A stretch of DNA of 55,876 nucleotides, taken from the NCBI GenBank assembly GCA_003427395.1, contig BFEA01000044.1, positions 1,031,219 to 1,087,094 on the forward strand, read 5' to 3'. This document shows, one piece after another, positions 4,206 through 47,837 of the stretch. Within the stretch, counting starts at the first letter, position 1. The number at the start of each line of letters is the position of its first letter. The stretch comes from Chara braunii (taxonomy: Eukaryota > Plantae > Charophyceae). A program made the position numbers and the translations under genes. Under the pieces are notes generated by a model, which was not told the DNA's origin, did no database searches, and worked only from the letters and a program-made list of their open reading frames with translations.

Positions 4206-4208
4206 TAA

Positions 4209-9429: not shown

Positions 9430-11430
9430 TTTAGGTCTGGACCCCATAGAATAAAATCGTGGAAAAGTCCTGGAAAAGATGACCTGGAAAAACTTTTCCG
9501 GGAGTACATCGGAAGAAAATGGCCATCTGGAAACTCGATTGTGGGAGGTTCCGTCTGTTTTTGGAGACCCCACCGCGTCGGAAAGGTTGTCCGAAAAAGT
9601 AAAGTTCTGTGTTTTCACTTTCGTATCGTGGTGTCGTGGCGGCAAGCGAGCATCTTGCGCCGGAATTTTGTGCCATTTCGAGAGGGTAGGGGGGGGGGGC
9701 ATCTCTCTCTTGGAAAGTGCTTCTGGAAAGTGCTGGTCCAACCGTGGTCCGAGCCTGCACGTCCCGTGGTCCTTCCGGTCGGTAGACGGACGTTCTGTTG
9801 TCACCCACAAACGACCGGACACCCACGAAGTGCTCTGTCGAAGCAGGGCCGGACATCCATGACCACCGCGCGGTCCATTTGCAGTTTCCAGACTTTCCAA
9901 GCTCCTGGAAACTGCGTTTTCCAGCCTCTCCTGTGGGGTCCCGCCTTTCCGCAGGCGAACTTTTCCAGCCGGGTTTCCATGGAAACCCGAAGTTGGAAAC
10001 ATTTCTGGGGTTTTTCCTGTGGGGTCCAGGCCTTATTTTCCCTGTTTCACGCTGCCGCCCACCTGTGCCCCGCCACCCCCCCACCGTCACACTAAGGCTT
10101 GGACCCCACAGGTTTCCGCCTGGAAAAGCAGTTTTCCCTTGGAAAACGGGCGAACGATTTCGGAAACCTTGGAAATGCTTTTTCCGGGAACCCATNNNNN
10201 NNNNNNNNNNNNNNNNNNNNNNNNNNNNNNNNNNNNNNNNNNNNNNNNNNNNNNNNNNNNNNNNNNNNNNNNNNNNNNNNNNNNNNNNNNNNNNNNNNNN
10301 NNNNNNNNNNNNNNNNNNNNNNNNNNNNNNNNNNNNNNNNNNNNNNNNNNNNNNNNNNNNNNNNNNNNNNNNNNNNNNNNNNNNNNNNNNNNNNNNNNNN
10401 NNNNNNNNNNNNNNNNNNNNNNNNNNNNNNNNNNNNNNNNNNNNNNNNNNNNNNNNNNNNNNNNNNNNNNNNNNNNNNNNNNNNNNNNNNNNNNNNNNNN
10501 NNNNNNNNNNNNNNNNNNNNNNNNNNNNNNNNNNNNNNNNNNNNNNNNNNNNNNNNNNNNNNNNNNNNNNNNNNNNNNNNNNNNNNNNNNNNNNNNNNNN
10601 NNNNNNNNNNNNNNNNNNNNNNNNNNNNNNNNNNNNNNNNNNNNNNNNNNNNNNNNNNNNNNNNNNNNNNNNNNNNNNNNNNNNNNNNNNNNNNNNNNNN
10701 NNNNNNNNNNNNNNNNNNNNNNNNNNNNNNNNNNNNNNNNNNNNNNNNNNNNNNNNNNNNNNNNNNNNNNNNNNNNNNNNNNNNNNNNNNNNNNNNNNNN
10801 NNNNNNNNNNNNNNNNNNNNNNNNNNNNNNNNNNNNNNNNNNNNNNNNNNNNNNNNNNNNNNNNNNNNNNNNNNNNNNNNNNNNNNNNNNNNNNNNNNNN
10901 NNNNNNNNNNNNNNNNNNNNNNNNNNNNNNNNNNNNNNNNNNNNNNNNNNNNNNNNNNNNNNNNNNNNNNNNNNNNNNNNNNNNNNNNNNNNNNNNNNNN
11001 NNNNNNNNNNNNNNNNNNNNNNNNNNNNNNNNNNNNNNNNNNNNNNNNNNNNNNNNNNNNNNNNNNNNNNNNNNNNNNNNNNNNNNNNNNNNNNNNNNNN
11101 NNNNNNNNNNNNNNNNNNNNNNNNNNNNNNNNNNNNNNNNNNNNNNNNNNNNNNNGTGCTACCCAATGCAGCGTGGATGCCACGCAATGCCACCCACGAC
11201 CTGTCAGCGGCCACCCCGCAGGTCCACCACGGCCTACCCGGGCTTCGACGGCGGACAAAACAGCCAAACTGGTCCGAAAGTCTGGAAGAACTCTTCCAAA
11301 AGTCTGGAAAAGAGGCACTTCGGCGGGGTCCCGTCTTTTCTTTTCCAAAACCTTCCAGGACTTCCGCGTCGCTTTACCAGGGAAACTGCCTTTTCCAGAC
11401 TTTGGGTGGGGTCCACCTCTAATCCAAATC
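9430..11430. mobile_element. Possible DNA-transposon remnant rich in subterminal-type motifs (spans gap 10196-11155)
   Basis: Dense GGAAAA/TTTTCC and GGGGTCC/GGACCCC motifs in both orientations on both sides of the gap; no coding signal. Confidence 0.25.
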
Positions 11431-11466
11431 TGAGTTCGAACCCAGACAAATTACGAGTGTGAATCA

Positions 11467-11590
11467 GGGCCTCGCTGCACCACTCTCGAAATGTGCAAAA
11501 CGAGAGTGAATCTTCTGCTAGAATATGGAAAGATACACACCACCCTGAATTTTGTTTTTTCTGCATTTCGAGAGTAGTGCAGCGAGGCCC
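11467..11590. mobile_element. Tourist/PIF-Harbinger-like MITE (124 bp)
   Basis: 27-bp TIR gggcctcgctgcac(c/t)actctcgaaatg with one mismatch; 3-bp TSD TCA (11464-66, 11591-93). Confidence 0.8.
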
Positions 11591-11800
11591 TCAATTAATG
11601 TTGAATTACCTGGGAACGGTCACTTGGATGATTGACATCTCAAGGGTGTTGCCCTTCTAGAAGGAGGGGGGGAGAGGGGGGGTTTCGAAATGCAATTCTG
11701 AAGTTTGAGTTAAAAACAAAAAGAAGAAGAAGAAAAAGGAAAGAGAAGAAAGAAAACAAAGGAAGGAAAGAAAGAGGGGAGGGGGAAAAAAGGAGCGCAC

Positions 11801-11842
11801 GTAAATTCGCCGATGTAAATTCGCGGATGTAAATTCGCCGAT
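11801..11842. repeat. 14-bp tandem repeat x3 (gtaaattcgcSgat)
   Basis: Directly visible. Confidence 0.9.
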
Positions 11843-13123
11843 GTCGTCTGGAGGCGTACTCCTCCTGGAGCAAGGTCCCACTGGCAAAGACGGTTGGATT
11901 AAACGCCTGAATCTGGATGGGTTTCAAGCAGAGGTGGAGAGGAGCAGATCAAAAGCCACTTTCTGCACGTATGCACAGTGAAGTCCAGATTCAGAGGTAA
12001 AATCCACCCCTCCCTGCTAGTGAGACCTCGCCACTGGATTATCCAGCGTCGACAAGCGGAGGTGTGCGCGGAAAAGAAGAAAGAAGAAAGAAGAAAGAAA
12101 GAACTGGCAACTTTGTTTTTCTTCTCCACAAGAGGGCTGGCCTGGACGTATCTGAGCGTGAATAATGGCCAGATTCAGTCGAAATAGTCCTGGTTCGAAA
12201 GTCCACTACCGAGTGTGATGGCTAATGGATTCCTAAAGTTCCAGTCCTTCGGTGTTAGAAGCGGGATTGTGCGTTTCTTCTTTTTCCCTCTTTTTTTTTG
12301 GATTGAACAATTTCGACCATTTCTCGATTTCCCGAAAAGAAAGATGGAACGACCATGCGAATCTTTTTTTTTTTTNNNNNNNNNNNNNNNNNNNNNNNNN
12401 NNNNNNNNNNNNNNNNNNNNNNNNNNNNNNNNNNNNNNNNNNNNNNNNNNNNNNNNNNNNNNNNNNNNNNNNNNNNNNNNNNNNNNNNNNNNNNNNNNNN
12501 NNNNNNNNNNNNNNNNNNNNNNNNNNNNNNNNNNNNNNNNNNNNNNNNNNNNNNNNNNNNNNNNNNNNNNNNNNNNNNNNNNNNNNNNNNNNNNNNNNNN
12601 NNNNNNNNNNNNNNNNNNNNNNNNNNNNNNNNNNNNNNNNNNNNNNNNNNNNNNNNNNNNNNNNNNNNNNNNNNNNNNNNNNNNNNNNNNNNNNNNNNNN
12701 NNNNNNNNNNNNNNNNNNNNNNNNNNNNNNNNNNNNNNNNNNNNNNNNNNNNNNNNNNNNNNNNNNNNNNNNNNNNNNNNNNNNNNNNNNNNNNNNNNNN
12801 NNNNNNNNNNNNNNNNNNNNNNNNNNNNNNNNNNNNNNNNNNNNNNNNNNNNNNNNNNNNNNNNNNNNNNNNNNNNNNNNNNNNNNNNNNNNNNNNNNNN
12901 NNNNNNNNNNNNNNNNNNNNNNNNNNNNNNNNNNNNNNNNNNNNNNNNNNNNNNNNNNNNNNNNNNNNNNNNNNNNNNNNNNNNNNNNNNNNNNNNNNNN
13001 NNNNNNNNNNNNNNNNNNNNNNNNNNNNNNNNNNNNNNNNNNNNNNNNNNNNNNNNNNNNNNNNNNNNNNNNNNNNNNNNNNNNNNNNNNNNNNNNNNNN
13101 NNNNNNNNNNNNNNNNNNNNNNN

Positions 13124-13257
13124 TTTTTTTTTTTTTTTTGGATCAGAACAGATGCGATCTTAGTCCGAAAATGTAAGTAAAAAAAAAAAAAAAAATCTTA
13201 GTCCGAAAACCGAGAACGTCATCGTTCCAATTTTGACGGCTGTGATGTCCCGAAGGA
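13124..13257 (-). pseudogene. Chimeric snRNA-derived retro-sequence: U6 5' part + U2-like 5' part + poly(A), with a nested poly(A) micro-insertion
   Basis: Minus strand: TCCTTCGGGACATC(acagc)CGTCAAAATTGGAACGAT (U6 5' ~35 nt), then GACGTTCTCGGTTTTCGGACTAAGATCGCATCTGTTCTGATCC once the nested insert is removed (compare U2 TTCTCGGCCTTTTGGCTAAGATC-AAGTGTA-GTATCTGTTCTTATC), then an A-run up to the gap. Confidence 0.6.
13157..13209 (+). mobile_element. Tiny retro-insertion (tgtaagt + poly(A)) with 15-bp TSD
   Basis: atcttagtccgaaaa at 13157-13171 and 13195-13209 flanks 13172-13194. Confidence 0.8.
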
Positions 13258-13384
13258 GGTTCTTCTTTTTCTTCAAACAGTTGCAATCTTCAAATGGATG
13301 AGGGAAAAAAAAATAGAAAAAGAAAGGATAAGGAATGTGGTGTCCCATACCGCAGAAGCAGCCTTTGCTTGGGCTTGTGTTTTT

Positions 13385-13511
13385 GGGCCTCGCTCCGCTA
13401 CTCACCACATGCACAAAAGGGGAAAAAAAAATGACAATGTTATCTTTCCATGTTCCAGCGGAGGATTCACGTTCATTTTGCACATCTCTGGAGAGTAGTT
13501 GAGCGAGGCCC
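13385..13511. mobile_element. Tourist/PIF-Harbinger-like MITE (127 bp), related to 11467-11590
   Basis: TIR gggcctcgctc(cg/aa)ctactc; flanked by TTT/TTT; similar length and the same GGGCCTCGCT terminus as the other copy. Confidence 0.7.
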
Positions 13512-13601
13512 TTTCTCTTGTTTCGATCATTGTCTGTTCTTCCCTTTTTTTCGCCTGATAACGCGCTTGCCGGTAGGGAGCAACCGGACTGCCGCGCCCC
13601 A

Positions 13602-13655
13602 TGGGGCCAATAGTTTTTTTTTTTTTTTTTTTTTTTTTGGTTGGTGGGGCCAATA
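13602..13655 (-). mobile_element. Tiny poly(A) retro-insertion with 11-bp TSD
   Basis: tggggccaata at 13602-13612 and 13645-13655 flanks g(T)n-ggttgg. Confidence 0.65.
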
Positions 13656-14184
13656 ATTTGGGCATTGTGCAAAAGAAGGAAAAAAAGAAAGAAAAAAATG
13701 GGTTTCAGCTTTCCAAAAATACTTTTTTTTTTTTTTTTAATTTAATAATACATTACTGTATTCAGGCGTGCTCATTGTGTTTGTTGTGCAGTGGCGAGCG
13801 GGATGATGATGACTACCCCGGACATTGACGGATAGCAAGATAGTAACAGAGAGCGAGACCAAAATCAAGAGCGAACGAGAGGTAGGCATGTCTCTTACGT
13901 AGTGTTAAATGTGTTTACAAACTCTTTTTTTCTATTTTTTTATGTTTACAACCTCTTATGTAGTGTTATATATATGTTTACACGTGTGTCTATTTAAATC
14001 GAATGCCTCACGTCTTCCCCCGAACACAACACACCCTGATAACGAATGTATACAATCGAGCTCTCCGGTCCGGTGCAGCCAAAATAAGGCTGCGTTGTGT
14101 TCGGGGGAAGACGGTAGTGGCATGATCAACCGGATGATCGTAGTCTTTGTCCTCCTTCACGTTCTCAAATGAACCTCCATCACT

Positions 14185-14199
14185 CACACGCGCACACAC

Positions 14200-14243
<44 letters not shown>

Positions 14244-15065
14244 AGNNNNNNNNNNNNNNNNNNNNNNNNNNNNNNNNNNNNNNNNNNNNNNNNNNNNNNN
14301 NNNNNNNNNNNNNNNNNNNNNNNNNNNNNNNNNNNNNNNNNNNNNNNNNNNNNNNNNNNNNNNNNNNNNNNNNNNNNNNNNNNNNNNNNNNNNNNNNNNN
14401 NNNNNNNNNNNNNNNNNNNNNNNNNNNNNNNNNNNNNNNNNNNNNNNNNNNNNNNNNNNNNNNNNNNNNNNNNNNNNNNNNNNNNNNNNNNNNNNNNNNN
14501 NNNNNNNNNNNNNNNNNNNNNNNNNNNNNNNNNNNNNNNNNNNNNNNNNNNNNNNNNNNNNNNNNNNNNNNNNNNNNNNNNNNNNNNNNNNNNNNNNNNN
14601 NNNNNNNNNNNNNNNNNNNNNNNNNNNNNNNNNNNNNNNNNNNNNNNNNNNNNNNNNNNNNNNNNNNNNNNNNNNNNNNNNNNNNNNNNNNNNNNNNNNN
14701 NNNNNNNNNNNNNNNNNNNNNNNNNNNNNNNNNNNNNNNNNNNNNNNNNNNNNNNNNNNNNNNNNNNNNNNNNNNNNNNNNNNNNNNNNNNNNNNNNNNN
14801 NNNNNNNNNNNNNNNNNNNNNNNNNNNNNNNNNNNNNNNNNNNNNNNNNNNNNNNNNNNNNNNNNNNNNNNNNNNNNNNNNNNNNNNNNNNNNNNNNNNN
14901 NNNNNNNNNNNNNNNNNNNNNNNNNNNNNNNNNNNNNNNNNNNNNNNNNNNNNNNNNNNNNNNNNNNNNNNNNNNNNNNNNNNNNNNNNNNNNNNNNNNN
15001 NNNNNNNNNNNNNNNNNNNNNNNNNNNNNNNNNNNNNNNNNNNNNNNNNNNNNNNNNNNNNNNNN

Positions 15066-15132
<67 letters not shown>
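14185..15132. repeat. (CA)n then (GA)n microsatellites bordering gap 14246-15065
   Basis: Directly visible. Confidence 0.9.
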
Positions 15133-15134
<2 letters not shown>

Positions 15135-15649
15135 TCCGAAGAGTGTATATATGGGCGTCCCTCCCGTCGTCTTCTGGACAACCGCACTGTGGCCATGAAA
15201 CGCATAGTCATTATGAGGGTGCGTTGTGTTTGGAGAAAGACGGTAGTCAGACAGCGATGTGGCGGGAGATTGCTGGATAATCGATTTATAAACCGGATCG
15301 AGTGTGATGGGTTGATTTTTTTTTTACGTAATCAGTTTGCTATTAAGCAGCTTGCCTGATCATCACGGTGATGGCATTGTGCGTGTTTTTGCTAAAGAAT
15401 TGATAGTTGTTGTTTTATTTGTCTGCTTTTGTGTTTGAAGCTATAATTAGGTTCGATTCATCACTGGACGCATTATCTTTCTTGCTTGATTTGTTTGGTT
15501 TTGCTGGTTGGATTGATTGATGATTGGTCCCGACTTGATTGCGTGATGAATTGGTCGTAAAAGCCTAATTGAGCTTGTTGATATCTAGTAATTGGTTTGT
15601 TGATTCGTTAGATTGCTTGCTGACTGTGAAGGTGGAGTTTTGGTTGGTT

Positions 15650-19441: not shown

Positions 19442-22400
19442 CTCCCGCCGCCCTAAGTTCGAGGTCCTCCGAGAATACTTCAGTCCAAGGCAGGACCTTT
19501 ACCTTTCTTATCTCTCTCATAGGCTCGGACTACATCGGGAGCAGTCTCTAGAAGCTCTGTTCGTGTAAACCAGCGGTCGTCTTCTGGCTTTTGGAAGGAA
19601 AACCGGACTTCGTACTGTTTCTGCGGACGACCTCTACCTCCTGTTCTGAATACATCCTCACCTACTATGCGATCAATGTCGAACCTCCCATCCATATCCG
19701 GAGGGATCATGGATCTCCACAATGGAAATTGCTGACTTGTAGCACAGGGCAACAACTTTGACGCATGAAAAACTACAGGTGTGGAGGTGTGCTGGAATCT
19801 CTATCATGTAGGACGGTCCATCTTCTCGGCCCTCGACTTCTAGGAATGGCCACGGTCCTCTATATGCAGGCAATAGTTTCTGCGAGATGTTCTCCTCAGG
19901 AGTAAACTCCTTTGACTTGACCCAGACTAAGTCGCCTACTTGAAACTGGGATAGGCGACGGTGTTTGTTGGCTTGTTCTATCATCTTGTGCTGGGCCTTT
20001 CTGAGGTTCTCTACCACGGTAGCTATCTCTTTCTCGTGCTGTAGCGCAAACTCCCTTGTACCGGGCGGTAGCCTCTGGATCTGATCCCGGTTAAGTCCCT
20101 CAAACGGTTTGCGCGGTCTAAAGGACTTATGTAGCTCGTTGGGAGTGCAACAAGTGGCTAAGTGTACACTATTGTTGTACGCGCTGGCTACCTTTGGGAG
20201 CATCTCGTCCTAGTTGACTTGATCGGGTCTAACGTACATCCTAGGAACTTGTTGCAGGATCTTGTTCATCTGTTCAATCTGACCGTTAGTCTCTAGATGA
20301 CAGCCAAACAACATCAACAACTTAGAGTCGTAGACTCTCATCAATTCCTGCCAGTTCTCACTAGTGAACCTGGTATCTTTGTCACTAACTATCGACAGCG
20401 TAGACCATGCTCCCTGACCCAATGATCAAAGAACTTCTGTATTACTAAATCCGCCCGTGCCTCTGAAGGCAAAGGAACCTATGGACTACAACCATGACTT
20501 GGCTCTTGCCATGTCTACTCCTGACCGCAGCATCCAATGGACACAGAATCTCCGGGTCCTGTCGGAATAGGCAAGGGTCTGAGAAAACCAAGAGGGGCTC
20601 GCGTAGTGGTCTTATTCCTCTGGCATACTTTACAATTGCGTACGTACTCTATGCAATCAGCCTTCATGTCAGGCCATGTATACGCACGGACAAGGTTGGC
20701 TAATGTCTTTTGCCAACCAAAGTGTCCCTCTATGTCATGGCATTCCCCAAGAATTAAGCTACGGATCTCCTCACTGTTGGGAACGCACAAACGGTCGACT
20801 ACGTTCGTCTTCTCAAATAGCAATTCATCCGTAGTGCGGTAATCTGGTTCAGTTTCAGGGGCCTCCTTAACTCTCTTGAGGAGGTCGCCATAAATGGGGT
20901 CCTGCATATACGCCTCTTTGACTTTCTGTTGCAGGTCTCTCCCTATGTCCAGATAATGTACTATCGTTCAAAAGTAATTAGTTTTTCTACTCAGAGCGTC
21001 CCCAACTACATTGTACTTTCCTTTGACTGGCTTGAACTCAAAGTCAAATTGGTCTATCTCTGCGGCCCACCTAGTAAGCTTAGGGTCATCTTGGCCTGAA
21101 TTGTCAGCCACCTCAATGTCGCGTGGTCTGAGTCGACTTTGAAGTGCCTCCCAAGCAAGTAGTGCTTCCAGTGGTCTAATGCTTGCCTGAGAGCATAGAG
21201 TTCCCTCTCATAGGTAAATGTCGCTACCTTCTCTGAAGGCATCCTAGCAGACATGAACTCTAGAGGTCTATACCCATTGCCATCATCTTGCTGTAAGACA
21301 ACACCTATATTATACCGACTGGCATCAGTAGTGACAACAAAAGGCAAGGATGAATCAACTACCTTGAGGACTGGGTACTCTAGCTTCTTCAGGGCTGATG
21401 TACCGTCTCGATCCCACTCCCAGATCGCTTCTGTCTTTAGCAATCTGCGAAGGGGTGCAACGATGGCAGAGAAGTTCCTCGTGAACTTCCTATAGTAGTT
21501 TGCTAGGCCTAGGAACGATAGCAACTCTGTCGACGTCCGAGGAGTCGGCCAGTCTCTAATGGCAGCTATTTTACTGTCCTCAGGTTTTAAGCCATCTCGA
21601 TCTAGGACGGGGCCCAAGAACAAAACTTGCGTCTTGGCCCACTCACACCTCTTTGCGTTGATCTTGAAGTTAGCCTCTCTCAACTTCTCCAAGACCTGCC
21701 TCAGATGAGCCTCGTGCTCTTGGAAGGTCTTGCTAAATACTAGAATGTCATCTCGGTACACAACTACAAATCTATCTAACCATGGCCTAAACAAATCGTT
21801 CATACAACGCTGGAACGTGGCTGGTGCATTGGTTAGTCCAAAGGGCATCACTATAAACTCGTAGTGCCCATATCCAGTCCTGAATGCCGTCTTGTACTGA
21901 TCATCAGGATGCACCTTTATCTAATGATAACCATACTTCAAATCTATCTTAGAGAAGTACTTGCAGCCCTGCACCCGATCTAACAAATCATCTATACGGA
22001 GCAGTGGTTCTGCATTAGTCAATGCACATTCGAAGTTCTCCCTCCTTTTTGGGGACAAACAAAACAGGTGCTCCAAATGGAGATGAATTGGGCCTAATCC
22101 AACCCTTCTCGAGGAGCTCATCTAACTGCTTGCAGAACTCCTCTAGCTCCCTTGGGGACATTCTGTAGATGGCTCCCTTATGAGTCCTACTGGCAGGCTC
22201 TATCTCAATGCGATGTTGGATTGGCCGTGGTACTACTCCTGTAGGCGGCTCAGAAAAGTTTGCATATTCTTCCAGCAGCTTGGCAATGATTGGATTTGTG
22301 AGTTCCTCTTAGGCTTTGTGACAGGCCTAACATAGGCCACAAAAACCTGTTCTTCTAATTGCTCCTTCTTTACTAATCACGCGAACGCGGGAGCGTTGAG

Positions 22401-24703
22401 ACAACAATGTGTTAGAGGGTTATCTACTCCTGACACATGGAACAGGCGAGCAGTCTTAACTTCACCTAATGGACTAGGGAGCCTACACTCGTGCTCTCTC
22501 AAATGGAGTGTGGCCCCCGTTGCCTTTCCCCAGCCCATTCCCAGGATCATATCGAATGGGAGGTTATCCTCTACGAGGAGAGTCAGGGAATGGAGAACTC
22601 TCTCTACCTTCCCATCTTTCTCTAGGCGAAAGCATGCCTGGACTCCCACGACGTAAGCCTCAACTCGCATAGTGCGATTGTCTGCGAGGATACTGACTAT
22701 AGGCTCTTCTAGCTTTTGGACCTTCAAATTTAGCTTCAACTTCTGAAGTGCTTTGCGGCTGATATAGCTACGGGTAGCCCCACTGTCTATAAGGGCCCCT
22801 ACCCTGCCTCTAAAAACCTCTGTATCTACTAAAACTAGTTGTCCCTTACCACCTTTCTTCATCTTGGCCCAGGTCGGCATCCTCTCCTTCAACGCCTCTG
22901 CCAAACCTGTGAGGCAAGTGCCTAGACAGACTCTAACACAATCAGTCTCTGGACAGCTACCTAGACGCTGGCCAACAACCTTTGCCATAGACACATGTGG
23001 TTTGGGAGTGTCTCTCTGGTGCGCGCACTCTTCTCCACATGGTCTAGGGGTAAGGGCAATTGCGATCCCTACCGACGGTTGCCTTTTACTGCCTGTGCTG
23101 CAGCTCGCCGGGCATCTCTATATGGGGCAGTATCTGATGATGTGCCCCAGATCACCACAATAAATACACTGATTCCTGGTCTATTCTCCTCTGCTACACT
23201 GTCTGTTCTAAGCCCATCTCTTCCCAGGGTCTGCCTTGTGGCAAGCCAGGGTGCCATTCACCCCTCCTGGGAGGTGATCGATAGGAACGCGGGCGGTTTT
23301 GCAGGGGACCTTGACCCCTTCCTACCTCTTGGCGGTTTCCTCTGCCGCCAACCCCCTGATCGCCTTGCCCTCGACCACCAGAGGCCCGACCCCCTTGGCC
23401 TTGGCCTCTTCCTCTTCCTTGCGGCATCCCTCCAACCGCGACAACAAAATAAGTTCTTCCCTGACTACTGCCACTGTCCTCCTCCTCTAGGCCCCACTCT
23501 ATTTGATAGTAGGGGACCTCTTCCATACCACCTTAATCGAGTGTGAGGATCAAGTGATCCTTGGCCCTAACTTGGCCATAGATGGTACGACCCTTCCATT
23601 TTTGCCCTGTCCAAATCTTTGTGCCAGAAGGTAGAAGCTGGCATGGACTGGGCTTCGAAAGTCACTACTTCCCTACTCAGGGTATCGTAGGTCATAGTAG
23701 ATTCCTTGCTCTTCTCAAAGAAATGCCCATGCAAAGGCTCGAGCATGGCACGATAGAACAATTGGACCAATTGGGTCTCAGTGACCCCATGGCCAGGGAC
23801 GACCACCAACTCGTCCATAACTCCCTTGAGTGCTCTGACACTCTTCCATTGACGAGAGTGGACGGTTTGCAATTTATCAGAGACTCTAATCCCTCTAGTG
23901 GCATCGACACATCTCTCACGAAGCAGCTTGAAAAACTTGTTGAGAGGGGTAATCATGGAGTATGCTACCATATCATTCTCAAATTTGGCAGTGCGGGCGA
24001 GTGATATGGCGAAGCTCGCTGCTTCGTCCTTGAGAGCATGGAAGGCGATAAGAACTTGCTCCTCAGGCAAAATCTTCTGGAGGTGAACATAGGAGTTGAT
24101 GTTAGCCTCCCAATTGTCAAAGTTTTCCCCTTTTTTCCCAATGCAGGAATCATGGAATTTCACTTTGATTGGGTCTCTTCGCGGGCGTACTTCCTCCTCC
24201 TTTGGAGTTGCTAGTTTGGCGCCCTCTATGGCACCCGTGCATAATCGCTCTGTACTTTCTATCCTGGCCTTCATCTCTGTGCCCACGTGCATCATCATTT
24301 CATGAGCAAACTGTCTAAACCCTAGGCGCATGGATTGTAAGTCTATGTCTTGGCCCCGGACGAACTGATACTGATCTTGTTGGGCTTTCGCTAGAAGCTC
24401 TATGTTCCTAGCCATAATGTCCAATTTCCCCTGTAATTCCGCCTGGCCTTCCATTTGCCTTCACTGTTCGTTTATGCCCCTCAACTCCTCCATCTTATCT
24501 ATCACCTCCATTCGTTGCCTCTTTTCTCTATTGAGGCACAATTTCCACTCCAACCTTCTCTCTTCTTCTATTGTTTGGCGGCATAAGGGGTCTTCCTCTG
24601 CCTCCAACTCTTTTATCACTGCCTCCTGTTTTGTCCTGGGGACATATAACATTGCTTCTCTTCGCCCAAGGACAGGCGGTACTTCGACGTGCGAGCACAA
24701 GCT

Positions 24704-25091: not shown

Positions 25092-25204
25092 ATTTTTTTA
25101 TTTTTTTTTTTGGACCATTTCTCGATTTATGCGTGTCATCCTTGCGCAGGGGCCAAGCTAATCTTCTCTGTATCGTTCCAATTTTAACGGATGTCCCGAA
25201 GGAC
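25092..25204 (-). pseudogene. U6: Full-length U6 snRNA retrocopy with poly(A) tail and 12-bp TSD, inserted in gypsy 1
   Basis: Minus strand GTCCTTCGGGACATCCGTTAAAATTGGAACGATACAGAGAAGATTAGCTTGGCCCCTGCGCAAGGATGACACGCATAAATCGAGAAATGGTCCAAA + A-tail. TSD a(c/g)cgcctttaac at 25080-25091 and 25205-25216. Removing the insert restores the [14 protein letters not shown] reading. Confidence 0.96.
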
Positions 25205-33900: not shown

Positions 33901-35047
33901 TACAAAATAAATGCAGAAAAATCATCTTTTGGTGCTTCATCTGTCTTGTATTTGGGACATGTGATTTCTGCAGATGGTCTTTCCCCCGAAGCCTCCAATG
34001 TTGCTGTTGTTAGGAATTAACCACAACCACAAACTGTTAGGGACATTAGATCTTTCATGGGTCTGGCATCTTACTATAGGGATTTTATCAGAAACTTCTC
34101 TATTGTGGCCACTCCCCTAACTAACATGTTGGCGAAAGATGTTCCTTTCAGATGGACACCTACATGCCAATTGGCTTTCTCTAGATTGAAGAAAGCCTTG
34201 ACCCAAGCACCTGTGTTGAAGCTCCCTGACCCTACCCTTCCATTTGTGTTGATCAATGATGCCAGTCAGTATGATGCAGAGGCTGGCCTTCAACAAGATG
34301 ACAGGTCTGGCCTTAAGCCTGTAGAGTTCATGAGCAAGAATATCAAGGCTCAAAAGATCCAAGCATCTACTTATGAGAAAGAACTGTTTGCCCTTGTATG
34401 TGCCCTCAAACAATGGAAAAACTTCTTGGTGGGAAGACACTTCAAGATCTCTTCTGATCATTCGACCTTGCAGTGGATGAAGACCCAGGGGGAGCTGAAT
34501 GATAAGTTGGCGAGATACATTCAGTTCATTGACTCTTTTGACTTTGAACTGAAGCACAAAAAGGGATGTTATAACAGAGTAGCTGATGCACTTTCTCGTA
34601 GGCCTGACACTTTTGCTGCCACTGCTCAGACCTACTCGCTTGGAGACTCCACTCGCCAGACCATTGCTGATGCGTTGCCTCATGACCCTATCTTTGGACC
34701 CATTGTCCTAAATCTGCAGGCCGATCCCAATTCTGCATCAGGCTATGCCTTGACTTCAATCCTCCTGTATACTATCAACGAGGGTGAGGAACGTCTGTGT
34801 ATCCCTAATGATCGCAAGATCATAACTCATCTGATTTCAGAGAGTCATGATGCACGTGGTCACTTCGGATTTTTGAAGACTTATGCTGCCCTGATCCAGC
34901 GCTTCTACTGGCCAAAAGTGAGTGAGGACATACTCCACTACTTAGAGACTTGTGAAGTGTGTGAAATGAATAAGGTCCACAAAATACCTACTATGGGACT
35001 GCTCAAACCTGTACCAATCCATGAAGGGCCAGGTGAGTCTGTGTCTG
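30971..35047 (+). pseudogene. gag-pol of gypsy 2 (gag with Pro-Thr tract, protease LLDCGA, RT YLDD, RNase H, integrase zinc finger)
   Basis: ORFs 30971, 31547 (PEKFNGE), 31921, 32697, 33275, 33766 and 34057; stops and frameshifts. Confidence 0.93.
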
Positions 35048-35143
35048 AACTTCTATGTGTTGCCACAATTGCCTTTTGATCTGGTACTGACCCTAAAATG
35101 GTTGAGGGCAATTAGTCCATGCATTGACTGGGTTGTGCTCGTA

Positions 35144-35484
35144 TCCGTATACTACTAAAGGAAACAGTGGTCCTCACATGGGGCCCAACAGAAACCGGGT
35201 GCCTCCGCGCGGGACCGGTTACGGGCAACAGGCAAGGGGGAACTGGTGGCACTCGCGGCGACGGCCGGACAAATGCTGGCGGGAACTGGCGACAACTTTG
35301 ACGAGTAGGGGGAAAAAAGGCCTTGGGGAAAGCTGCGACGAGGACGAGGGCCGGACACACGAAGACTTGCCAAAAAAAGGTTGTGCCGACACGCGCGATA
35401 ACTAGCGAAAAAAAAGGGTGGGGAATTGGCACAAGCGGCAACGGGGAATGAACGACACGATCTCGGTGGCGCCAAAGGTGGGGG

Positions 35485-35558
<74 letters not shown>

Positions 35559-36103
35559 NNNNNNNNNNNNNNNNNNNNNNNNNNNNNNNNNNNNNNNNNN
35601 NNNNNNNNNNNNNNNNNNNNNNNNNNNNNNNNNNNNNNNNNNNNNNNNNNNNNNNNNNNNNNNNNNNNNNNNNNNNNNNNNNNNNNNNNNNNNNNNNNNN
35701 NNNNNNNNNNNNNNNNNNNNNNNNNNNNNNNNNNNNNNNNNNNNNNNNNNNNNNNNNNNNNNNNNNNNNNNNNNNNNNNNNNNNNNNNNNNNNNNNNNNN
35801 NNNNNNNNNNNNNNNNNNNNNNNNNNNNNNNNNNNNNNNNNNNNNNNNNNNNNNNNNNNNNNNNNNNNNNNNNNNNNNNNNNNNNNNNNNNNNNNNNNNN
35901 NNNNNNNNNNNNNNNNNNNNNNNNNNNNNNNNNNNNNNNNNNNNNNNNNNNNNNNNNNNNNNNNNNNNNNNNNNNNNNNNNNNNNNNNNNNNNNNNNNNN
36001 NNNNNNNNNNNNNNNNNNNNNNNNNNNNNNNNNNNNNNNNNNNNNNNNNNNNNNNNNNNNNNNNNNNNNNNNNNNNNNNNNNNNNNNNNNNNNNNNNNNN
36101 NNN

Positions 36104-36154
<51 letters not shown>

Positions 36155-39100
36155 CCATTGATTGGTCGAGCAATGCAGCGGCTAACAGGTAAGTCTCCAA
36201 CCCCGCGGTTGGCCTCATGCTACAACATCGAAATATACACCACTATAGGTGTGTGTGTGTGTATGTGTTTTATTTGAACAGGAAGCCACCACGCGTATAC
36301 CCGCGTGGCAAACAAAACAATACAATACGCCTTATTTTGACAATGCAGATCCTAACCGTATGGCAAATAAGGAAATACGAAACTAATTCCCTCGGGGGGG
36401 TTTTGCATAAAGTACAAAACCTTTTAGTCTGACATTTTCCCACCTATTGGAATATTTGTGAATTACGTGCAATCGAAGGTAAAACGCCCAATTGGGTGGC
36501 ATGATTAGGAGCAACAATAGGCATCGTAACAGAATCATTTAAAAGTATTGGATGTAGTAAGCACAAATAAGGGGGATTATCAACATACTTTAAATAAACA
36601 GCATATTATAGTATAATGAGAGGGTAACTCCTATGACTCCTATATCGATAAAGGCCGATTGACTGATATACCTACTGCCCCCTTCTTTTTTTGGGGACCA
36701 GCGTGCGAATCACTTTCGAGCTATCCATCCACTCCACCTTGAACGAACATGCATAAGGTACACCACCGATGATTGAAAACCAACCAATGCATCCTAGTGC
36801 GATAAGCAAAGCCGACATATCCATGAGCTAAACACAATTTTTTGTGCATTATGTTTTTTTTTTTTTTTTTAAAGGAACCGAGATATGGGGGTTATTTCAT
36901 GCATTTCTATGACTATACTCGATTAGACTAAATGTATCTCCACTTATTTGAAATTTTCAACCATTACACACGAAACATCAGCGATACTGTATGAAGATAT
37001 TTCAAAACCAAACTATTCAATCCAAAAGCATCTATACACCCAGAAAAAATATTTTTACACACGAGGAAGCGGATGGTTAAAACAACGTTTTGTGATCCAA
37101 AGCGTACGCAATCTTATTAGTTCCAATGGATGAGTTCCACAAACTTCGAGCCACCCATCATTACTTGAGCACGATCCACCGCTACCTCCCCTGAACAATG
37201 CGCATACTCGTCACCAGCGAGTCTCATTCTTCACATCCCCAACTCGTAACACACCCTGGCACCTCAACCGGTTTTAACATAACCCATTCGAGAAATATAT
37301 CCGCTCCCGACCAATATAACCAGATTTCCATGCACGCCAAAATCAAGTATGACAGCAACTATTTGCTCAACAAGTTGACATCAGCGTAAACTATCATAGA
37401 CTTCCTTTTCTCTGCGCTGTTCTAGTACACATTCTTTGGAACACTTCTCATCATATCAACCCTACATTCAATAGCGCAGGAATAAGAACCGGCGTCTCCC
37501 GATCACTCCCACCTCCCTCACTCCTCCGCCAACTTGAACACCTATTTTCATCCTTCCAAAAGCAACAACCCGAACATTCCTACCATTCCAAGCTAAGGTG
37601 TTCCACCATTTGGCGGATGATAGTAGACCAGGAGAAACGCCGACGACTTAGTTCTCCAGTACGCGAATAGAGCATCAATAGCTGCTGTTATACGAAGCAC
37701 TGAACAACCGAAAAAAACAGCCCAAATTTCATCCACTCTCCAACACACATTCTCCCCAGCCGTCCAGAACGCCGAGCATTCACGCACGAACACCATCGTC
37801 GCTACCGCTGAAAACATCCATGCACCTATTAGCAGTAAGAAGATAATCATCCAAACGAAGAGATACTCCATCTCTCTACTCTTCACGACAAAATTTAGGC
37901 TAAGTAGTTCTTGTAAAGTTGATGAGGCAACACCCACAGTCACTAAAGAGCACAACAAAGAATTCCATAGCCATGAAGGAAGCCAATAGTGCAAGAAATA
38001 TGACAAAGATAGCGACTATCGCGACAAATACGTAAGCAGTTTCCATTAGGAATGCCTCATTCCGAAATCAAGCGCTCGCCATCTTTAGCGAGATCGCCCC
38101 AAATCCTACGTACACAGCTCACAATCACACACAATCAAAGATGGAAAAAATATTGTTAGGCAGCAACATGATCCGAATAATTATGCAAAAACACATCATA
38201 ATTAAGTCCTAATTCAACTAAACACCCCTTAGTGTCGACAAAATGGTAGGGTAGTTAGTAGGAAGTCCCAAAAACTTTTTCGTCGATCCCTGCCATGATC
38301 GGCTCGTCAGGGGATATAATACCCTTAGTTATCGTGTCGAAAAGGACAGGGCTTTTATTTTTAAAGCCGTGAAACAATACGTGATGCGGAGGCAAAAAAA
38401 AGTTAGGGAAGAATACGAAGATTTTACCACTCTTGATGACTCTGCCGGATCACCCATAGCTGCGCCCGCTGACCGAGCATCCACTATTCACTTGTTTGTT
38501 TAATCGAAACGCCAGAAGTTTATGAAGGAAGAATACGACACGCTTCGCGTACTTAGATCAGACAAAAGTACGTAACGAGGAGGAAGATATGAATGCGAAA
38601 AAAGAAGAAGACGCAACTGGTTGGACAACCATTCTCTGGAAAGTGACGACGATGCAGAACTTCCAAAGCCACTGGTACCAATATAGCGCCAGTACGCGGG
38701 CCTTTGGATTCAATGAGTCATTATGAACCAAGGCACCGCGCCCGTATGTGCAAAAGTGAGAGGATGAGTTGGTCTTCGAGCAACTCTTAAATATTGGTAT
38801 TCGAACTGGACTACCCTATTCATCAAGGCAATTCCTGCCCAGACCATTTTGAACAACAAATACAGGTCGAAGGGGGAGGTTAGGGAGGGCGCGATGCGGG
38901 GGTAAAAAACCACCCCTAGATAGGACCTGCCTATCGGTAAGTACCCGAATCACAATTCGATTCGTCGGGGAGGACGACCTACTTTCTGAGGACTACTACA
39001 TTTATTGATGGTTTAGAAAACAGTAGGAAACCATTAGCAGGTACCTGAAAAAAATATTTTTCGAAAAGGAAATTGTTTGGCAAGTATATGCGTTTATATA

Positions 39101-39189
39101 CATGCATACACACCCCTTTTAAGTATAAAAGCTAGAAAAAATATTCTTTTTTGGAAAGGACTTATTAAAAATACTTTAAATAAATGTAT

Positions 39190-39232
<43 letters not shown>

Positions 39233-39951
39233 NNNNNNNNNNNNNNNNNNNNNNNNNNNNNNNNNNNNNNNNNNNNNNNNNNNNNNNNNNNNNNNNNNNN
39301 NNNNNNNNNNNNNNNNNNNNNNNNNNNNNNNNNNNNNNNNNNNNNNNNNNNNNNNNNNNNNNNNNNNNNNNNNNNNNNNNNNNNNNNNNNNNNNNNNNNN
39401 NNNNNNNNNNNNNNNNNNNNNNNNNNNNNNNNNNNNNNNNNNNNNNNNNNNNNNNNNNNNNNNNNNNNNNNNNNNNNNNNNNNNNNNNNNNNNNNNNNNN
39501 NNNNNNNNNNNNNNNNNNNNNNNNNNNNNNNNNNNNNNNNNNNNNNNNNNNNNNNNNNNNNNNNNNNNNNNNNNNNNNNNNNNNNNNNNNNNNNNNNNNN
39601 NNNNNNNNNNNNNNNNNNNNNNNNNNNNNNNNNNNNNNNNNNNNNNNNNNNNNNNNNNNNNNNNNNNNNNNNNNNNNNNNNNNNNNNNNNNNNNNNNNNN
39701 NNNNNNNNNNNNNNNNNNNNNNNNNNNNNNNNNNNNNNNNNNNNNNNNNNNNNNNNNNNNNNNNNNNNNNNTTTTTTTTTTTTTTTTTTTTTTTTGTGCG
39801 TAAACTTAGCAACTGCTGGGGCATTTTGCAACGTTGGGCAGTGGCCGGTAGGGGTACATTGCAAAGATGGGATCCAACTGATGGCTGGGTTGTTTCACAA
39901 AATGTTTTGTCATCGTCCTTCCCCGCAGCATAGATGTGGCAAGTCCACTTG
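35144..39951 (+). mobile_element. Helitron (~4.8 kb including gaps; probably non-autonomous) inserted at an A|T site
   Basis: 5' A|TCCGTATACTACTAAAG; 3' imperfect hairpin ccgcagc-ata-gatgtgg followed by ...CACTTG|T (CTAG variant); no TSD. The flanks rejoin as ttgtgctcgta|ttcagttaaagac, matching ttgtgccagta|tttggttaaagac at ~33068-33091. Confidence 0.8.
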
Positions 39952-40285
39952 TTCAGTTAAAGACTGAATAGGGTGAGCTTAGACTTTGTGTATTAGCAAC
40001 AGACTATCACCCTAAGACAAGTTGCTATTGCCTGAAGGCATGAAAATTCTACAACTTGTCTAAACAAACTGGCCTCCAAAATCTCTTTGTGGCCTACGTG
40101 CCACAAAGTGATTTATCCAGCCCTCGTTGCGATCTCATCATCCAGAAAGTGGTTGATGAGTATGCCGACTTAGCTCAAGAGCCTTTTGGACTTGTCCATA
40201 GGCAGACTAAACACCGCATTGAGACCCTCCCTGACCCTACCCCTCCAAAGGGCAAAGTATATAGGATGTCTCCTGCTGAGCTAGA

Positions 40286-41269
40286 GTGCCTCTTGTCAAA
40301 GAGGTATTCGCTGAGAGGTGGGCTAGTGTACATGGGCACCCAACCTCTATTGTGAGTGAGAGAGACCCACGTTTTTGCAGCGATGAGTGGCGGTCCTTCT
40401 ATCAAGATTATCTTCACTCTAGGTTGGACATGACATCTGGTAGATACCCTGAAGCCAATGGATAGGCTGAAGTGATGAACCAGATCTTGTTTCAGCTACT
40501 ACGCCCTGTGATCACACCAGATCAACAGGACCGGGACAAACATCTGTCCAGGGCTCAACTTATGCACAATGCTTCTGTTCATAGTACAACTAGTTTCACC
40601 CCCTACAGATTGCATTGGGGTAGGGACCCTAGACAACCTCTCGATAGTATTATCGATAAGGCTAAGCCCAAATTGACCCTTTGCACTGCCGAGTTTGCCC
40701 GGAGCTATGAGAAGGATTTAGAGAAGGCCAGATTTAACATGTTGAAATCACAAAAGAGAATGATTGAACAAGCTAACAAACACAGACAGCCTTCTCCTAT
40801 CCGTCTTGGGCACAGGGTTTGGGTAAAGCTTTCAAAACTAACAGATGAACAGGACATCTCACGGAAGTTGTTGCCTGTCTATTACGGTCCATGGCAGGTT
40901 CTAGATAGTGTACGGGCAAATCCGTTTGGACCCTCTTATGTCCTCACTGTACCCCCACACATCCGGACCCATCCTATCTTCCATGCTTCAAAACTGTTGC
41001 CGTTCAGCCCTGGTGACACATTTCTTGATTGGCCACAACAGTTCGGGCCTCTTATCCTCGGAAAGGGATATGAAGTCGAAAGCATTGAAGATCAGTGGGG
41101 CACCGGCCCCAGCTGGGAGTATCTTATCAAGTTCCTTTTCCAACCTCCTGCTGAGGACCGTTGGTTTACAAGAAAGGAACTTCTCAAGTCTGCAAATTCA
41201 TTCGTGCAGTTCTACAAGGCTGAGCAAAGTGGGAAATTGCCCAGGCGGTCTCCTTGTGGACACTCCTAG
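40286..41269 (+). pseudogene. Integrase core/C-terminus and chromodomain of gypsy 2
   Basis: HGHPTSIVSERDPRF, YYGPW, HPIFHASKL, YEVESI...YLIKF...EDRWF. Confidence 0.9.
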
Positions 41270-42393: not shown

Positions 42394-45137
42394 TGGCCCC
42401 GATGCAGACATGACATGGGAGACATCAGAGACCCCTACGCGATATCTAGGCATCTTGCTGACAAAAGACGGCTTTGCCCCTCAAATGGCCCAAAATGTAC
42501 TCATCAACTAGGCTACCAGCCGGGCTGCCCGGGTCTTGGGTGGCCAGCCTGTGCAAGAACCAGGGAAGGTCTCAGCAAAAAAAACATAAAAATAATAAAC
42601 TCCAAAAAATCTGCAAACAAAATATGTTATGCAGAAAAATAAACTGAACAACTTTTGCCTCAGGGTCGCATCGAAATTCTTCACCAAATTGAGAATAAAA
42701 ATTAAAATTTGAAAATAATGTTTTTTTTTTTTTTTTTTTTTTTTTTTTTCGGCCCGGCCGGGCAAGTGACCCCGGGCCACTCTGGTAGCCTAACTCGTCA
42801 AACAAATTAACAAACTGGGCAGGTGGGGTAGCGCATTCACATCATTGTTGGGCCGAGCACTGGCCATCAACACATCAATCTTTTCAATAATGTGGTATAT
42901 AGCGTCAATCTGGACAGTTCCGGACCATTCAATCAAGGTACTTAATCGTAGAGCAAGAGCTTACTTGTGGTCGGGCGACCCCAACAAAGAGAACTGCATA
43001 CCAAAGATAGCCTGGCATATTACATCACAAAGAAACCAGCCAGAGGAGGTCTTGGTATCATAGACCCCAAACAGGAAACCAAAGTCTTATAAGTTAAATG
43101 GATAGTCAAACTATTGACCAAACCTGGAACGGCATGGAATAAACTGGCCTTGGATAGCATCAGGGGCGTAGCACCTACAACCACACCAGAAAATATGTTC
43201 GGTCTGTTCTGGGTAATGACCAAGGAATGGAGCCCAAGTACAGGGCGCAGAAATCAACGAAGAGGAACCGGGCCAAACGAAGCCAGGCCCCACACACCAT
43301 ATCGGACCGCTTTGCTACGGATACGGCGGGAAGTCATCCCGAAGAAGGTGGGTAGACCCAAATCCAAAGATGAGGTACTGAGGCAACCCCTGTTTGGTAA
43401 TCCGTGGTTGAGAGATGAAAGTGATCACCAACTATCCCTTAAGCCTAGAGGAAGGAGATGACTATTGTGGATCAAACATGGAGTCCGGAAAGTGAGCCAT
43501 CCGTGGAACGAGGAGAAAAAGGACTGGGTGACAGAATAGGAACTTGCCGCCTCCCAGCTCAAAGGATGTCACCGTCGGGATGAGAATCTACAATCCATTA
43601 TCAAACAATCCATTATCAACTGCATCCCAGAAGGCTGGAAGGAGTTGTTGAGCGTAGCCTCAACCTGGGAATCGGGCGAATGGGGAGTGAGGGTGCAGGA
43701 GTTAAACCCCTCAAGGGCCTATCAATTTCCCCGTAAGCAGCAAGGGTCGAATACCCTGGTGGTGTTTACCTCTTTCCCAATTACCCTCTCCACGCAAGGC
43801 CTCCCATCTATCCTGAATACGGAGGTAGAAAGAACAGTCCTAAACCCTTTTGTACTAAAAAAAGTAAGAGTGTCGGGATCATGGCCAAAAACAATATTCA
43901 GAATAGATACGGCGATTCAAGACTTGGAATTTGATCCAGCAGAGTGGGCTTGGACACCAGACAGAAGCAGGAATCTCAAAGCGAATGTCCCCATCCAGGA
44001 ATACACAGTCAAACTGGGATACAACCTACTCCTCAAAACAAAGGATCCTGACCCAACAATGAAGACAAAGGATCCTGACCCAACAATGAAGAACAGATGG
44101 CAGAAGTTATATGGTCAGGACGCTAGTCAGATCCCACAAATACCATGGAAAATTTTCAAGTCAATCCGACCGGTCAAAATCAGAAGCCTCCAATGGCTCA
44201 TCTCATATGTGGCTCTACCGGTTAACCAGTGGCTGCATATCAGAAGATGTAAGAATCACCCTAACAGCTCAGATTTATGTGCGGTATGTTCAGAAAACGA
44301 ACCAGAAGATATGATACATTGCCGGATACACTGTAGAGAGGCGATGGAATATTGGGCGAGGTCCTCGGATCTCTGGGACTCCCTCTTCTCAACTCCCCTC
44401 CTGAACACCCCATCCAACTCCTTCTATGGACTAACATCCCAGCTCAATTCCACAAGACAGAGAAAACGTGGTTCGGAATGATGAGAAAGGTAACACTGTG
44501 GTGAGTGTGGTCCATCTGGAAGGAAAGGTGCTGCAGAACCATTGAGGGACTCTCAACTCCAAGGGAGAAGGTACGGGCGGAGACAAGGACCTTGATTGCA
44601 GGCAGAGATTCTGGGTAAGTGGCATAAGACGAGACACTCCATGCCAAATGACGAAGAGCAACAGACAAGAATCAAGGCAAAATTCATTAAGGTGTGGCTC
44701 GCAGGGGGCCAAGTACCTGAGATAAATGACTTTGGCATACGGTGGAAAAACTGGCACAACTCAGAAGCCGGGTGGAGAAGGCAGATATCCCAGCCAGCAG
44801 GTGGACAAGATCCGCCACAGCCCATGTAATATTGAAGGGCAATTACGAGACTGCATCCTCTGTAGCTTCTATTACGTTTCTTGCTCTTTATCTTTCATCT
44901 GACAGGTTCATGCAGTGGACCTGAGAGGAAAGGTGGAAGTAAGAGAAGCTGACAGTCAATCCTCCACAATGCTGGTCAGGGTTCCTTCGGCCAGACGGAA
45001 AGAAGCCTGAGTGTGTTTCATGATGTAATATTTTATTCTGACTTGCCGGTGGAATAGGAACTGGACTGATGCTCTCCAGAATGGAAATGGAGGCAGGGCC
45101 ATAAGGACCGGTTTTAATAAAAAATAAAATAAAAAAA
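42394..45137 (+). mobile_element. 5'-truncated L1-clade LINE (post-RT ORF2, CxxC...HxxxxC, 3'UTR, poly(A)), interrupted near its 5' end by a MITE-like insert
   Basis: SLLGRALAINTSI, RAYLWSG, KIAW, LRQPLFGN, CAVC...EDMIHCRIHC; stop 44829; A-rich tail ~45116-45137; candidate TSD tctaagac(a/g)g at 42384 and 45138; 27-bp in-frame duplication TKDPDPTMK. Confidence 0.85.
42435..42790. mobile_element. MITE-like insert related to 45603-46097
   Basis: Begins ctacgcgatatc (compare terminus CTACGGAGATATC); contains cccggg/ccggcc motifs and A/T tracts. TSD not found. Confidence 0.35.
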
Positions 45138-46761: not shown

Positions 46762-46901
46762 TCTTCTTCTTCTTCCTCCTTTTTTTTTTCTTTTTTCTTT
46801 TTTAATTTGGACCATTTCTTGATTTATGCGTGTCATCCTTGCGCAGGGGCCGTGCTAATCTTCTCTCTATTGTTCCAATTTTAACGGATGTCCCGAAGGA
46901 C
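46762..46901 (-). pseudogene. U6: Full-length U6 snRNA retrocopy with A-rich tail and 16-bp TSD
   Basis: U6 body 46804-46901 on the minus strand, ACAGAGA box mutated to AGAGAGA; ends ...GGTCCAAATT + A-tail; perfect TSD agcaaccaaccattct at 46746-46761 and 46902-46917. Confidence 0.96.
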
Positions 46902-47051
46902 AGCAACCAACCATTCTGGTTTGGAGAAAAGGAAAGAAAGCAGCATGCTGTGTTTTTCTCACGGCCTTCAGTTTTCGGTATCCTTGTGCAGAAATATCTC
47001 CGGAAACATACCGTGGTTCACTTGAGACATTTTTTGGAGAAGGGGAGGGGA

Positions 47052-47837
47052 ATGGCCACATCAACAGTGCCTGGTGAAGCAGCTCTCAACCCAGAAGGGC
47101 ATAGCCTTCCTGTCAGGAGCACAACTGCCGAGGATGTTTCTGTAAGTGGGGAGTTATGTGACATCCTTCAGCAATCGAGGTCGTTCTGTCTTCGCGCAAA
47201 AGCTTTCTTTGTTGCATGGCAAGGTGTCTTGACGATTGCCTATAGTGGGATGCCTCCTGCCATGCTGGAGCTGAGAGAGGCATTTGAGCAAAGATTCCCA
47301 TACTTGAAGGAAAACCCGGGTTCCAGATGGCCTAAGACAACTCTGGGTGCTGTTCAGGACAACAAACGCATCACCCCTGAGCAGTTGAGGACACTGCACC
47401 GAATTTGCGCTGAAGAAAGCCAAAACCTGGCTGCCATTGCAGACAACAGTAGAGATGGCACTTTTTGCATAGATAACATCTCGATTGTGATATACGAGAA
47501 CATGTCACTGGAGAAAACAATCTCTGTCACCACCGTACCGCTCCAGCGCCCAGCTGATCTCTCGCTCCCCAGTGATGAAGAATGTCAAAAGGTGGATGCA
47601 GTTCTTGCTCCGTTCTCCGAGCACTGTTTGGACGACTACTGGTTTCAGGCGTCGAAAGACGGAAATCGTATTTCACACTACAAGCGCATCCAACCGGGGG
47701 CAACTGTTGTTCATTATCTGAGCAAGGTGCCGTCGTTCGTGGGGCGCTTCAAGGATAGAGTAGATGAGGAGTTACCAGCCCTCTACAGTTGGCTCTCGGA
47801 GGACCATCTGCATGTAACTATGCGTGCAATTCTGTGA
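47052..47837 (+). CDS. Intact 261-aa protein; putative circularly permuted 2H-phosphoesterase (LigT/DUF1868-like fold)
   Basis: Uninterrupted non-TE ORF with C-terminal YSWLSEDHLHVTMRAIL (2H motif-1-like) and internal NPGSRWPKTTLG (motif-2-like, H>K). Candidate splice acceptor ttgtgcag| ends at 46991, so the N-terminus could extend. Confidence 0.75.
   Translation: MATSTVPGEAALNPEGHSLPVRSTTAEDVSVSGELCDILQQSRSFCLRAKAFFVAWQGVLTIAYSGMPPAMLELREAFEQRFPYLKENPGSRWPKTTLGAVQDNKRITPEQLRTLHRICAEESQNLAAIADNSRDGTFCIDNISIVIYENMSLEKTISVTTVPLQRPADLSLPSDEECQKVDAVLAPFSEHCLDDYWFQASKDGNRISHYKRIQPGATVVHYLSKVPSFVGRFKDRVDEELPALYSWLSEDHLHVTMRAIL

Follow-up and report, generated by a model that had tools for sequence, protein, structure and literature searches.

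What kind of protein is encoded by the intact ATG open reading frame (ORF) at positions 47052-47837 (+) of a 55,876-nucleotide stretch of Chara braunii DNA (contig BFEA01000044.1; hereafter, the window)? Its 261-aa product is encoded in a single uninterrupted frame and carries two short motifs, both far above chance: WPKTTLG at residues 93-99 (K95 codon at 47334-47336) and LHVTMRAIL at the C-terminus (H254 codon at 47811-47813). The original prediction, made from the sequence alone, had taken it for an intact gene encoding a circularly permuted 2H phosphoesterase with one HxT motif changed to PKTT and the other, LHVT, at the C-terminus. A pair of histidines in set order defines the 2H enzymes, which are normally inactive once the second histidine is lost. 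We found that the product is one of an unnamed family of proteins with a 2H fold, a reordered chain, and one key histidine replaced by lysine.

Both structure and profile comparisons place the protein in the 2H fold. The model is two-lobed, with a pseudo-two-fold alpha/beta architecture and a central concave sheet. Chains of 2H proteins took the top 12 VIA ranks with the full model and the top 18, consecutively, with residues 30-168, and Foldseek, which had been proposed as a check, matched the N-terminal fragment to a cyclic phosphodiesterase (CPDase; E 4.6e-4, TM 0.65). Language-model features indicate DUF1868/LigT. One superposition (model 56-261 on chain 1-132) takes in the strands of both motifs, and its range, together with covariation, suggests that the two motifs face each other across the cleft. 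Full-model Foldseek searches of the PDB and BFVD returned nothing or chance matches. Pfam gave no useful match to whole proteins, to all members, or to N- and C-fragments, and neither NCBIfam nor the PDB sequences, searched with the protein itself and with three profiles, gave more than chance matches. Because the chain is permuted, standard sequence searches and full-chain Foldseek overlook the family.

The order of the chain was read against a 15-sequence ThpR/LigT alignment made from fetched records, which was compared with the family profiles; a shallow enterobacterial ThpR alignment was uninformative in HHalign, and diverse ThpR genes were added. In native order, residues 219-261 align with ThpR 7-50 (E 0.011) and residues 31-153 with ThpR 53-160 (E 0.12), so that the two pieces are swapped. 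Moving residues 213-261 to the front produced a single 142-column alignment to ThpR 7-160 (E 4.3e-4), and the re-permuted profile is colinear with ThpR, up to 7-164. An alternative re-permutation reached E 0.005-0.008 and a reversed control E 0.5. Scanning the cut point gave the longest alignments, 145-146 columns against 41 for the native order, with cuts at 166-214, and colinearity appears only when the chain is cut in this linker. One of 60 motif-preserving block shuffles reached the score of these cuts. The HHalign probability is modest (35%), so the profile test supports the permutation but does not prove it. Among the best 150 of 514 representatives retrieved with the C-terminal module, the module is C-terminal in the full-length members; of the exceptions, the two that were inspected appear to be exons miscalled as ORFs.

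The profile alignments also give the register, in which the C-terminal module corresponds to the normal N-terminal module and KTT to the second motif. H254, T256, and A259 align with His43, Thr45, and Phe48 of ThpR at posteriors above 0.95, K95 and T97 with His125 and Thr127 at about 0.63, and ThpR Arg130 falls on Ala100 at 0.32. A register with KTT as the first motif, in which the helix and strand of the N-terminus would have come from the C-terminus, is allowed by the symmetry of the fold and gives a similar full-model superposition score, but the sequence profiles never preferred it. In either register, the chain ends right after a motif strand and starts with the helix that follows.

Along the chain, a variable and poorly modelled tail (residues 1-29) precedes a helix, a long strand, a hairpin strand, and a helix (residues 34-81; 47151-47294), which correspond to about residues 53-110 of ThpR, the stretch after the first HxT motif, and are N-terminal in Chara. 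The motif ENPGSxWPKT(T/S)L occupies residues 87-98 (47310-47345), and a helix and the final strands of the canonical C-terminal part, with an invariant E154, occupy residues 109-169 (47376-47558). The ancestral C- and N-termini are connected by a three-helix linker (residues 170-215; 47559-47696), which has conserved Y196, G204, R206, H209, Y210, and R/K211 and is predicted to form a lid over the Lys side of the cleft. Residues 216-240 (47697-47771), close to the C-terminal end, are the equivalent of the strand and helix that open the canonical chain (ThpR 7-30), and the motif W-x6-H-(V/I/M/L)-T-x-R (47790-47837) stands at the extreme C-terminus. Simple covariation (304 rows, effective number 208) fits a single closed domain bearing a lid, although the analysis is shallow and uses the family signal on which AlphaFold also relies. 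The top-ranked coupling is Y64-T96; the relocated first strand pairs with the canonical last strands (Y148-G216, I147-A217, S144-V220, L153-T218, and T156-Y222), the His strand pairs with the new N-terminal strand (L47-V255 and A49-L253), and the linker packs on the Lys side (G58-R206, A100-S208, Q102-I207, and L112-A200). Weaker couplings (T97-L248 and S91-A259) run across the motifs.

Conservation of PKTT and LHVT was counted in 173 near-full-length homologues. Position 95 is K in 167, H in three, G in two, and I in one; T or S is found at position 97 in 167, H254 in 171, T256 in 170, and R258 in 167. A second set of 304 distinct rows gave K95 in 291 and H254 in 299. From bacteria through ginkgo, H254, T256, K95, and T/S97 are conserved at 97-99%, which, judged from the sequences, is a pattern typical of a catalytic centre. 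Further conserved polar residues are K75, E87, E154, R206, H209, Y210, and R258, and in every scored member but one, 4-13 residues separate the HxT motif from the C-terminus. The three proteins with His at position 95 (P0101, P0134, and P0185, one from a Bacteroidota metagenome-assembled genome) form a small bacterial clade in a quick tree (SH-aLRT 93), and this site therefore tolerates the canonical residue. Other variants at this position are Gly (P0112, P0123, and P0131) and Ile (P0217). The fold, the permutation, the register, and the His-to-Lys change of the original prediction have been borne out, the last of these across the family.

Homologue searches recovered 28 and then 219 relatives, and the C-terminal module alone retrieved 514 clusters at 50% identity. 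Named members include Sphagnum, Closterium, Klebsormidium, Chlorokybus, Diphasiastrum, a Mesen1 model, and a Gb_ (Ginkgo) model; many chlorophytes and the chytrids Blyttiomyces and Chytriomyces are also among them, and the Atlas holds one diatom-rich cluster. Bacterial members come from Spirochaetales, Phycisphaerae, Verrucomicrobia, Dehalococcoidia, Bacteroidota, and Thermodesulfobacteriota, with at least 12 loci in an exact-pattern scan of 185,579 prokaryote genomes. Angiosperms and higher fungi are not named among the hits shown, a pattern that was not tested as absence and may reflect lineage losses. Viral contigs, phages, and plasmids yielded no relatives, and the two plasmid matches that were followed up or listed were due to chance. 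All named members are annotated as hypothetical proteins. The typical member is about 230 aa long and stands alone, lacking any reliable partner domain, and the one-off fusions resemble merged gene models. In literature searches of incomplete coverage, no 2H family that is permuted or has a His/Lys site was described. Several hundred hypothetical proteins gain a fold and candidate catalytic residues, and the natural His and Gly variants, together with a gene in the cultured bacterium Flexithrix dorotheae DSM 6795, make the family directly testable.

A careful tree groups the Chara protein with streptophytes (support 98/96), which is consistent with vertical descent and rules out the chlorophyte origin seen in a quick tree. 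Three introns, at positions matching Chara residues 74 (phase 0), 120 (phase 2), and 204 (phase 1), are common to Klebsormidium and Sphagnum but absent in Chara (47052-47837 compared with L117:3001-4529 and L118:3001-5505). The loss of all three suggests that the Chara gene was replaced by an mRNA-derived copy (a retrogene). No poly(A) remnant is visible downstream of the ORF, and the homologue searches named no second Chara copy. In 13 small assembled runs from four studies, guessed to be RNA, 93-100% of the words of the ORF are present, which hints that it is expressed. Just upstream, positions 46955-46990 contain a branch-point-like site, a pyrimidine tract, and a CAG whose last base, 46990, is in frame with the ORF; these could point to a 5' intron or an upstream exon.

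What would such a protein do? Catalysis by ThpR uses His43 as general acid and His125 as general base, with Arg130 stabilising the transition state and Phe48 stacking on the base; the H43A, H125A, and R130A variants are inactive (PMC4201822). As the leading reading, we give roughly even odds (about 0.5) to a stand-alone, metal-independent phosphoesterase that arose from a 2H ancestor, probably DUF1868/LigT-like, and hydrolyses a cyclic phosphate or phosphodiester in a substrate unlike that of ThpR. The linker, about 45 residues long, would have joined the ancestral N- and C-termini, and a new opening would have formed directly behind the first HxT strand, with both motif strands retaining their V-shaped cleft. 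H254 and T256 may protonate and hold the leaving oxygen, like His43 and Thr45 of ThpR, and K95 and T/S97, perhaps with R258 or the lid residue R206, could bind and stabilise the phosphate and so replace the lost Arg130. Activation of the water or substrate hydroxyl would fall to a lid residue, H209 or E154, or to K95 if its pKa is low; more broadly, K75, E87, E154, R206, H209, Y210, and R258 could provide the missing chemistry. The likely reaction would be the opening of a cyclic phosphate or the cleavage of a phosphodiester, with an RNA end or a small metabolite as substrate. This substrate is probably not that of ThpR, because the stacking aromatic is lost and a lid covers the site, and a nucleotide seems less certain than the original prediction implied because Phe48 and Arg130 have no counterpart. 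Beyond the fold, the order, and the conservation, we infer these steps.

Clearly less probable is a non-catalytic protein in which H254 and K95, beneath the lid, clasp a nucleotide, cyclic nucleotide, or sugar phosphate, and which serves as a sensor, chaperone, or adaptor in the manner of AKAP18. The general-base His, transition-state Arg, and stacking Phe of ThpR are all absent, Lys-to-Gly variants occur, and AKAP18, whose 2H domain is described as AMP-binding in the title of a work cited in PMC11214414, is among the structural matches; yet near-invariant His, Thr, Lys, and Arg in both bacteria and eukaryotes, in stand-alone proteins whose fusions are one-off cases, look more enzyme-like. About as tentative is the idea that the His/Lys site under its linker-built lid defines a permuted 2H family with chemistry new to the fold (such as phosphotransfer, the making of a cyclic phosphate, or a covalent Lys intermediate); its target in green algae and non-flowering plants would be a metabolite or RNA end not yet recognised. 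Somewhat more doubtful is a different chemistry in the form of transesterification or phosphotransfer through a substrate hydroxyl, either with His and Lys making a cyclic phosphate as in RNase A, or by ligation, or through a covalent Lys/His intermediate; this is a speculative proposal, and bacterial gene neighbourhoods held no co-occurring ligase, kinase, or pathway gene. It is very improbable that internal two-fold symmetry or the model has produced a spurious 2H likeness or permutation in what is an unrelated alpha/beta fold, given that a permutation predicts weak sequential scores, that the chain ends and starts at equivalent points in both registers, that the N-terminal fragment had 18 straight 2H matches and a Foldseek E of 4.6e-4, and that the language-model features and a closed covariation ring agree.

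Bacterial neighbours of the gene vary (ROK, GlgC, an ABC transporter, RecJ, and fatty-acid genes), and no neighbour family recurs in more than three of 48 identity groups. Four similar loci (L001, L014, L015, and L016) have an operon with an RlmI-like PUA plus S-adenosylmethionine (SAM) methyltransferase upstream of the gene; in L002, L003, and L025 Sua5 precedes it, with a DeoC/LacD aldolase before Sua5 in L002 and L025. Sua5 plus an aldolase is the arrangement of Spirochaetales-like loci. The slight lean toward RNA-modification neighbours is too weak to use. Within the window, two U6 small nuclear RNA copies lie on the minus strand at 46801-46901 and 25104-25204 (92 and 91 bits in Rfam); each has an A-rich tail at its end, and they are likely retroposed pseudogenes. 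A functional tie to the copy 150 bp upstream of the gene, by analogy with Usb1, was rejected because of its changed ACAGAGA box, its A-rich tail, the second copy in the window, and the presence of the family in bacteria. Retroelement fragments (reverse transcriptase, RNase H, aspartyl protease, SH3_Tf2, and zf-RVT) occur at 3594-4379, 21054-22994, 40472-41269, and 43645-44481, and low-GC stretches at about 9800-15400 and 34000-40000 resemble simple-repeat arrays. The further claim that this is the only intact host gene was checked in part: five of 20 other long ORFs encode retroelement domains and 15 have no match, in a survey of long ORFs that did not search for spliced genes with short exons.

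Among known 2H systems, the family can be compared with the RNA 2',3'-cyclic phosphodiesterase ThpR/LigT of Escherichia coli (PF02834 and PF13563; PDB 4QAK and 1VGJ, and YjcG 2D4G). The extended motifs of that subfamily, HxTxxF and HxTxxR (PMC4201822), are not retained, as Phe48 aligns with Ala/Gly259 and Arg130 with Ala/Cys100. Compared with ThpR, the Chara chain is permuted, has an extra lid of about 45 residues and no Pfam match at a useful E-value, and keeps the acid side while carrying Lys at the base position in place of His125; R258, E154, and, in the lid, R206, H209, and Y210 are additional conserved residues. One HxT motif (171/173) and one KxT/S motif (167/173) stand where the superfamily has two HxT/S motifs. 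DUF1868 (2H-phosphodiest, PF08975; Atu0111, PDB 2FSQ), a group of canonical chain order with both His motifs, is a lead for the nearest relative, although neither whole proteins nor fragments matched the PF08975 hidden Markov model (HMM). Usb1 (5V1M), the plant Appr>p CPDase (1FSI/1JH6), AKAP18 (2VFK), ASCC1, the viral 2',5'-phosphodiesterases, and Acb1 each have two His motifs and align in canonical order with part of the Chara chain only; the Usb1 (HVSL) Pfam HMM gave no match, the two HxS motifs of Usb1 are not shared, and that likeness is one of fold only. The family thus has the fold of these enzymes but departs from both the two-His and the chain-order definitions, and probably works like a 2H phosphoesterase. 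With order and second histidine both changed, and kept from bacteria to ginkgo, it tests the minimal catalytic needs of the 2H fold.
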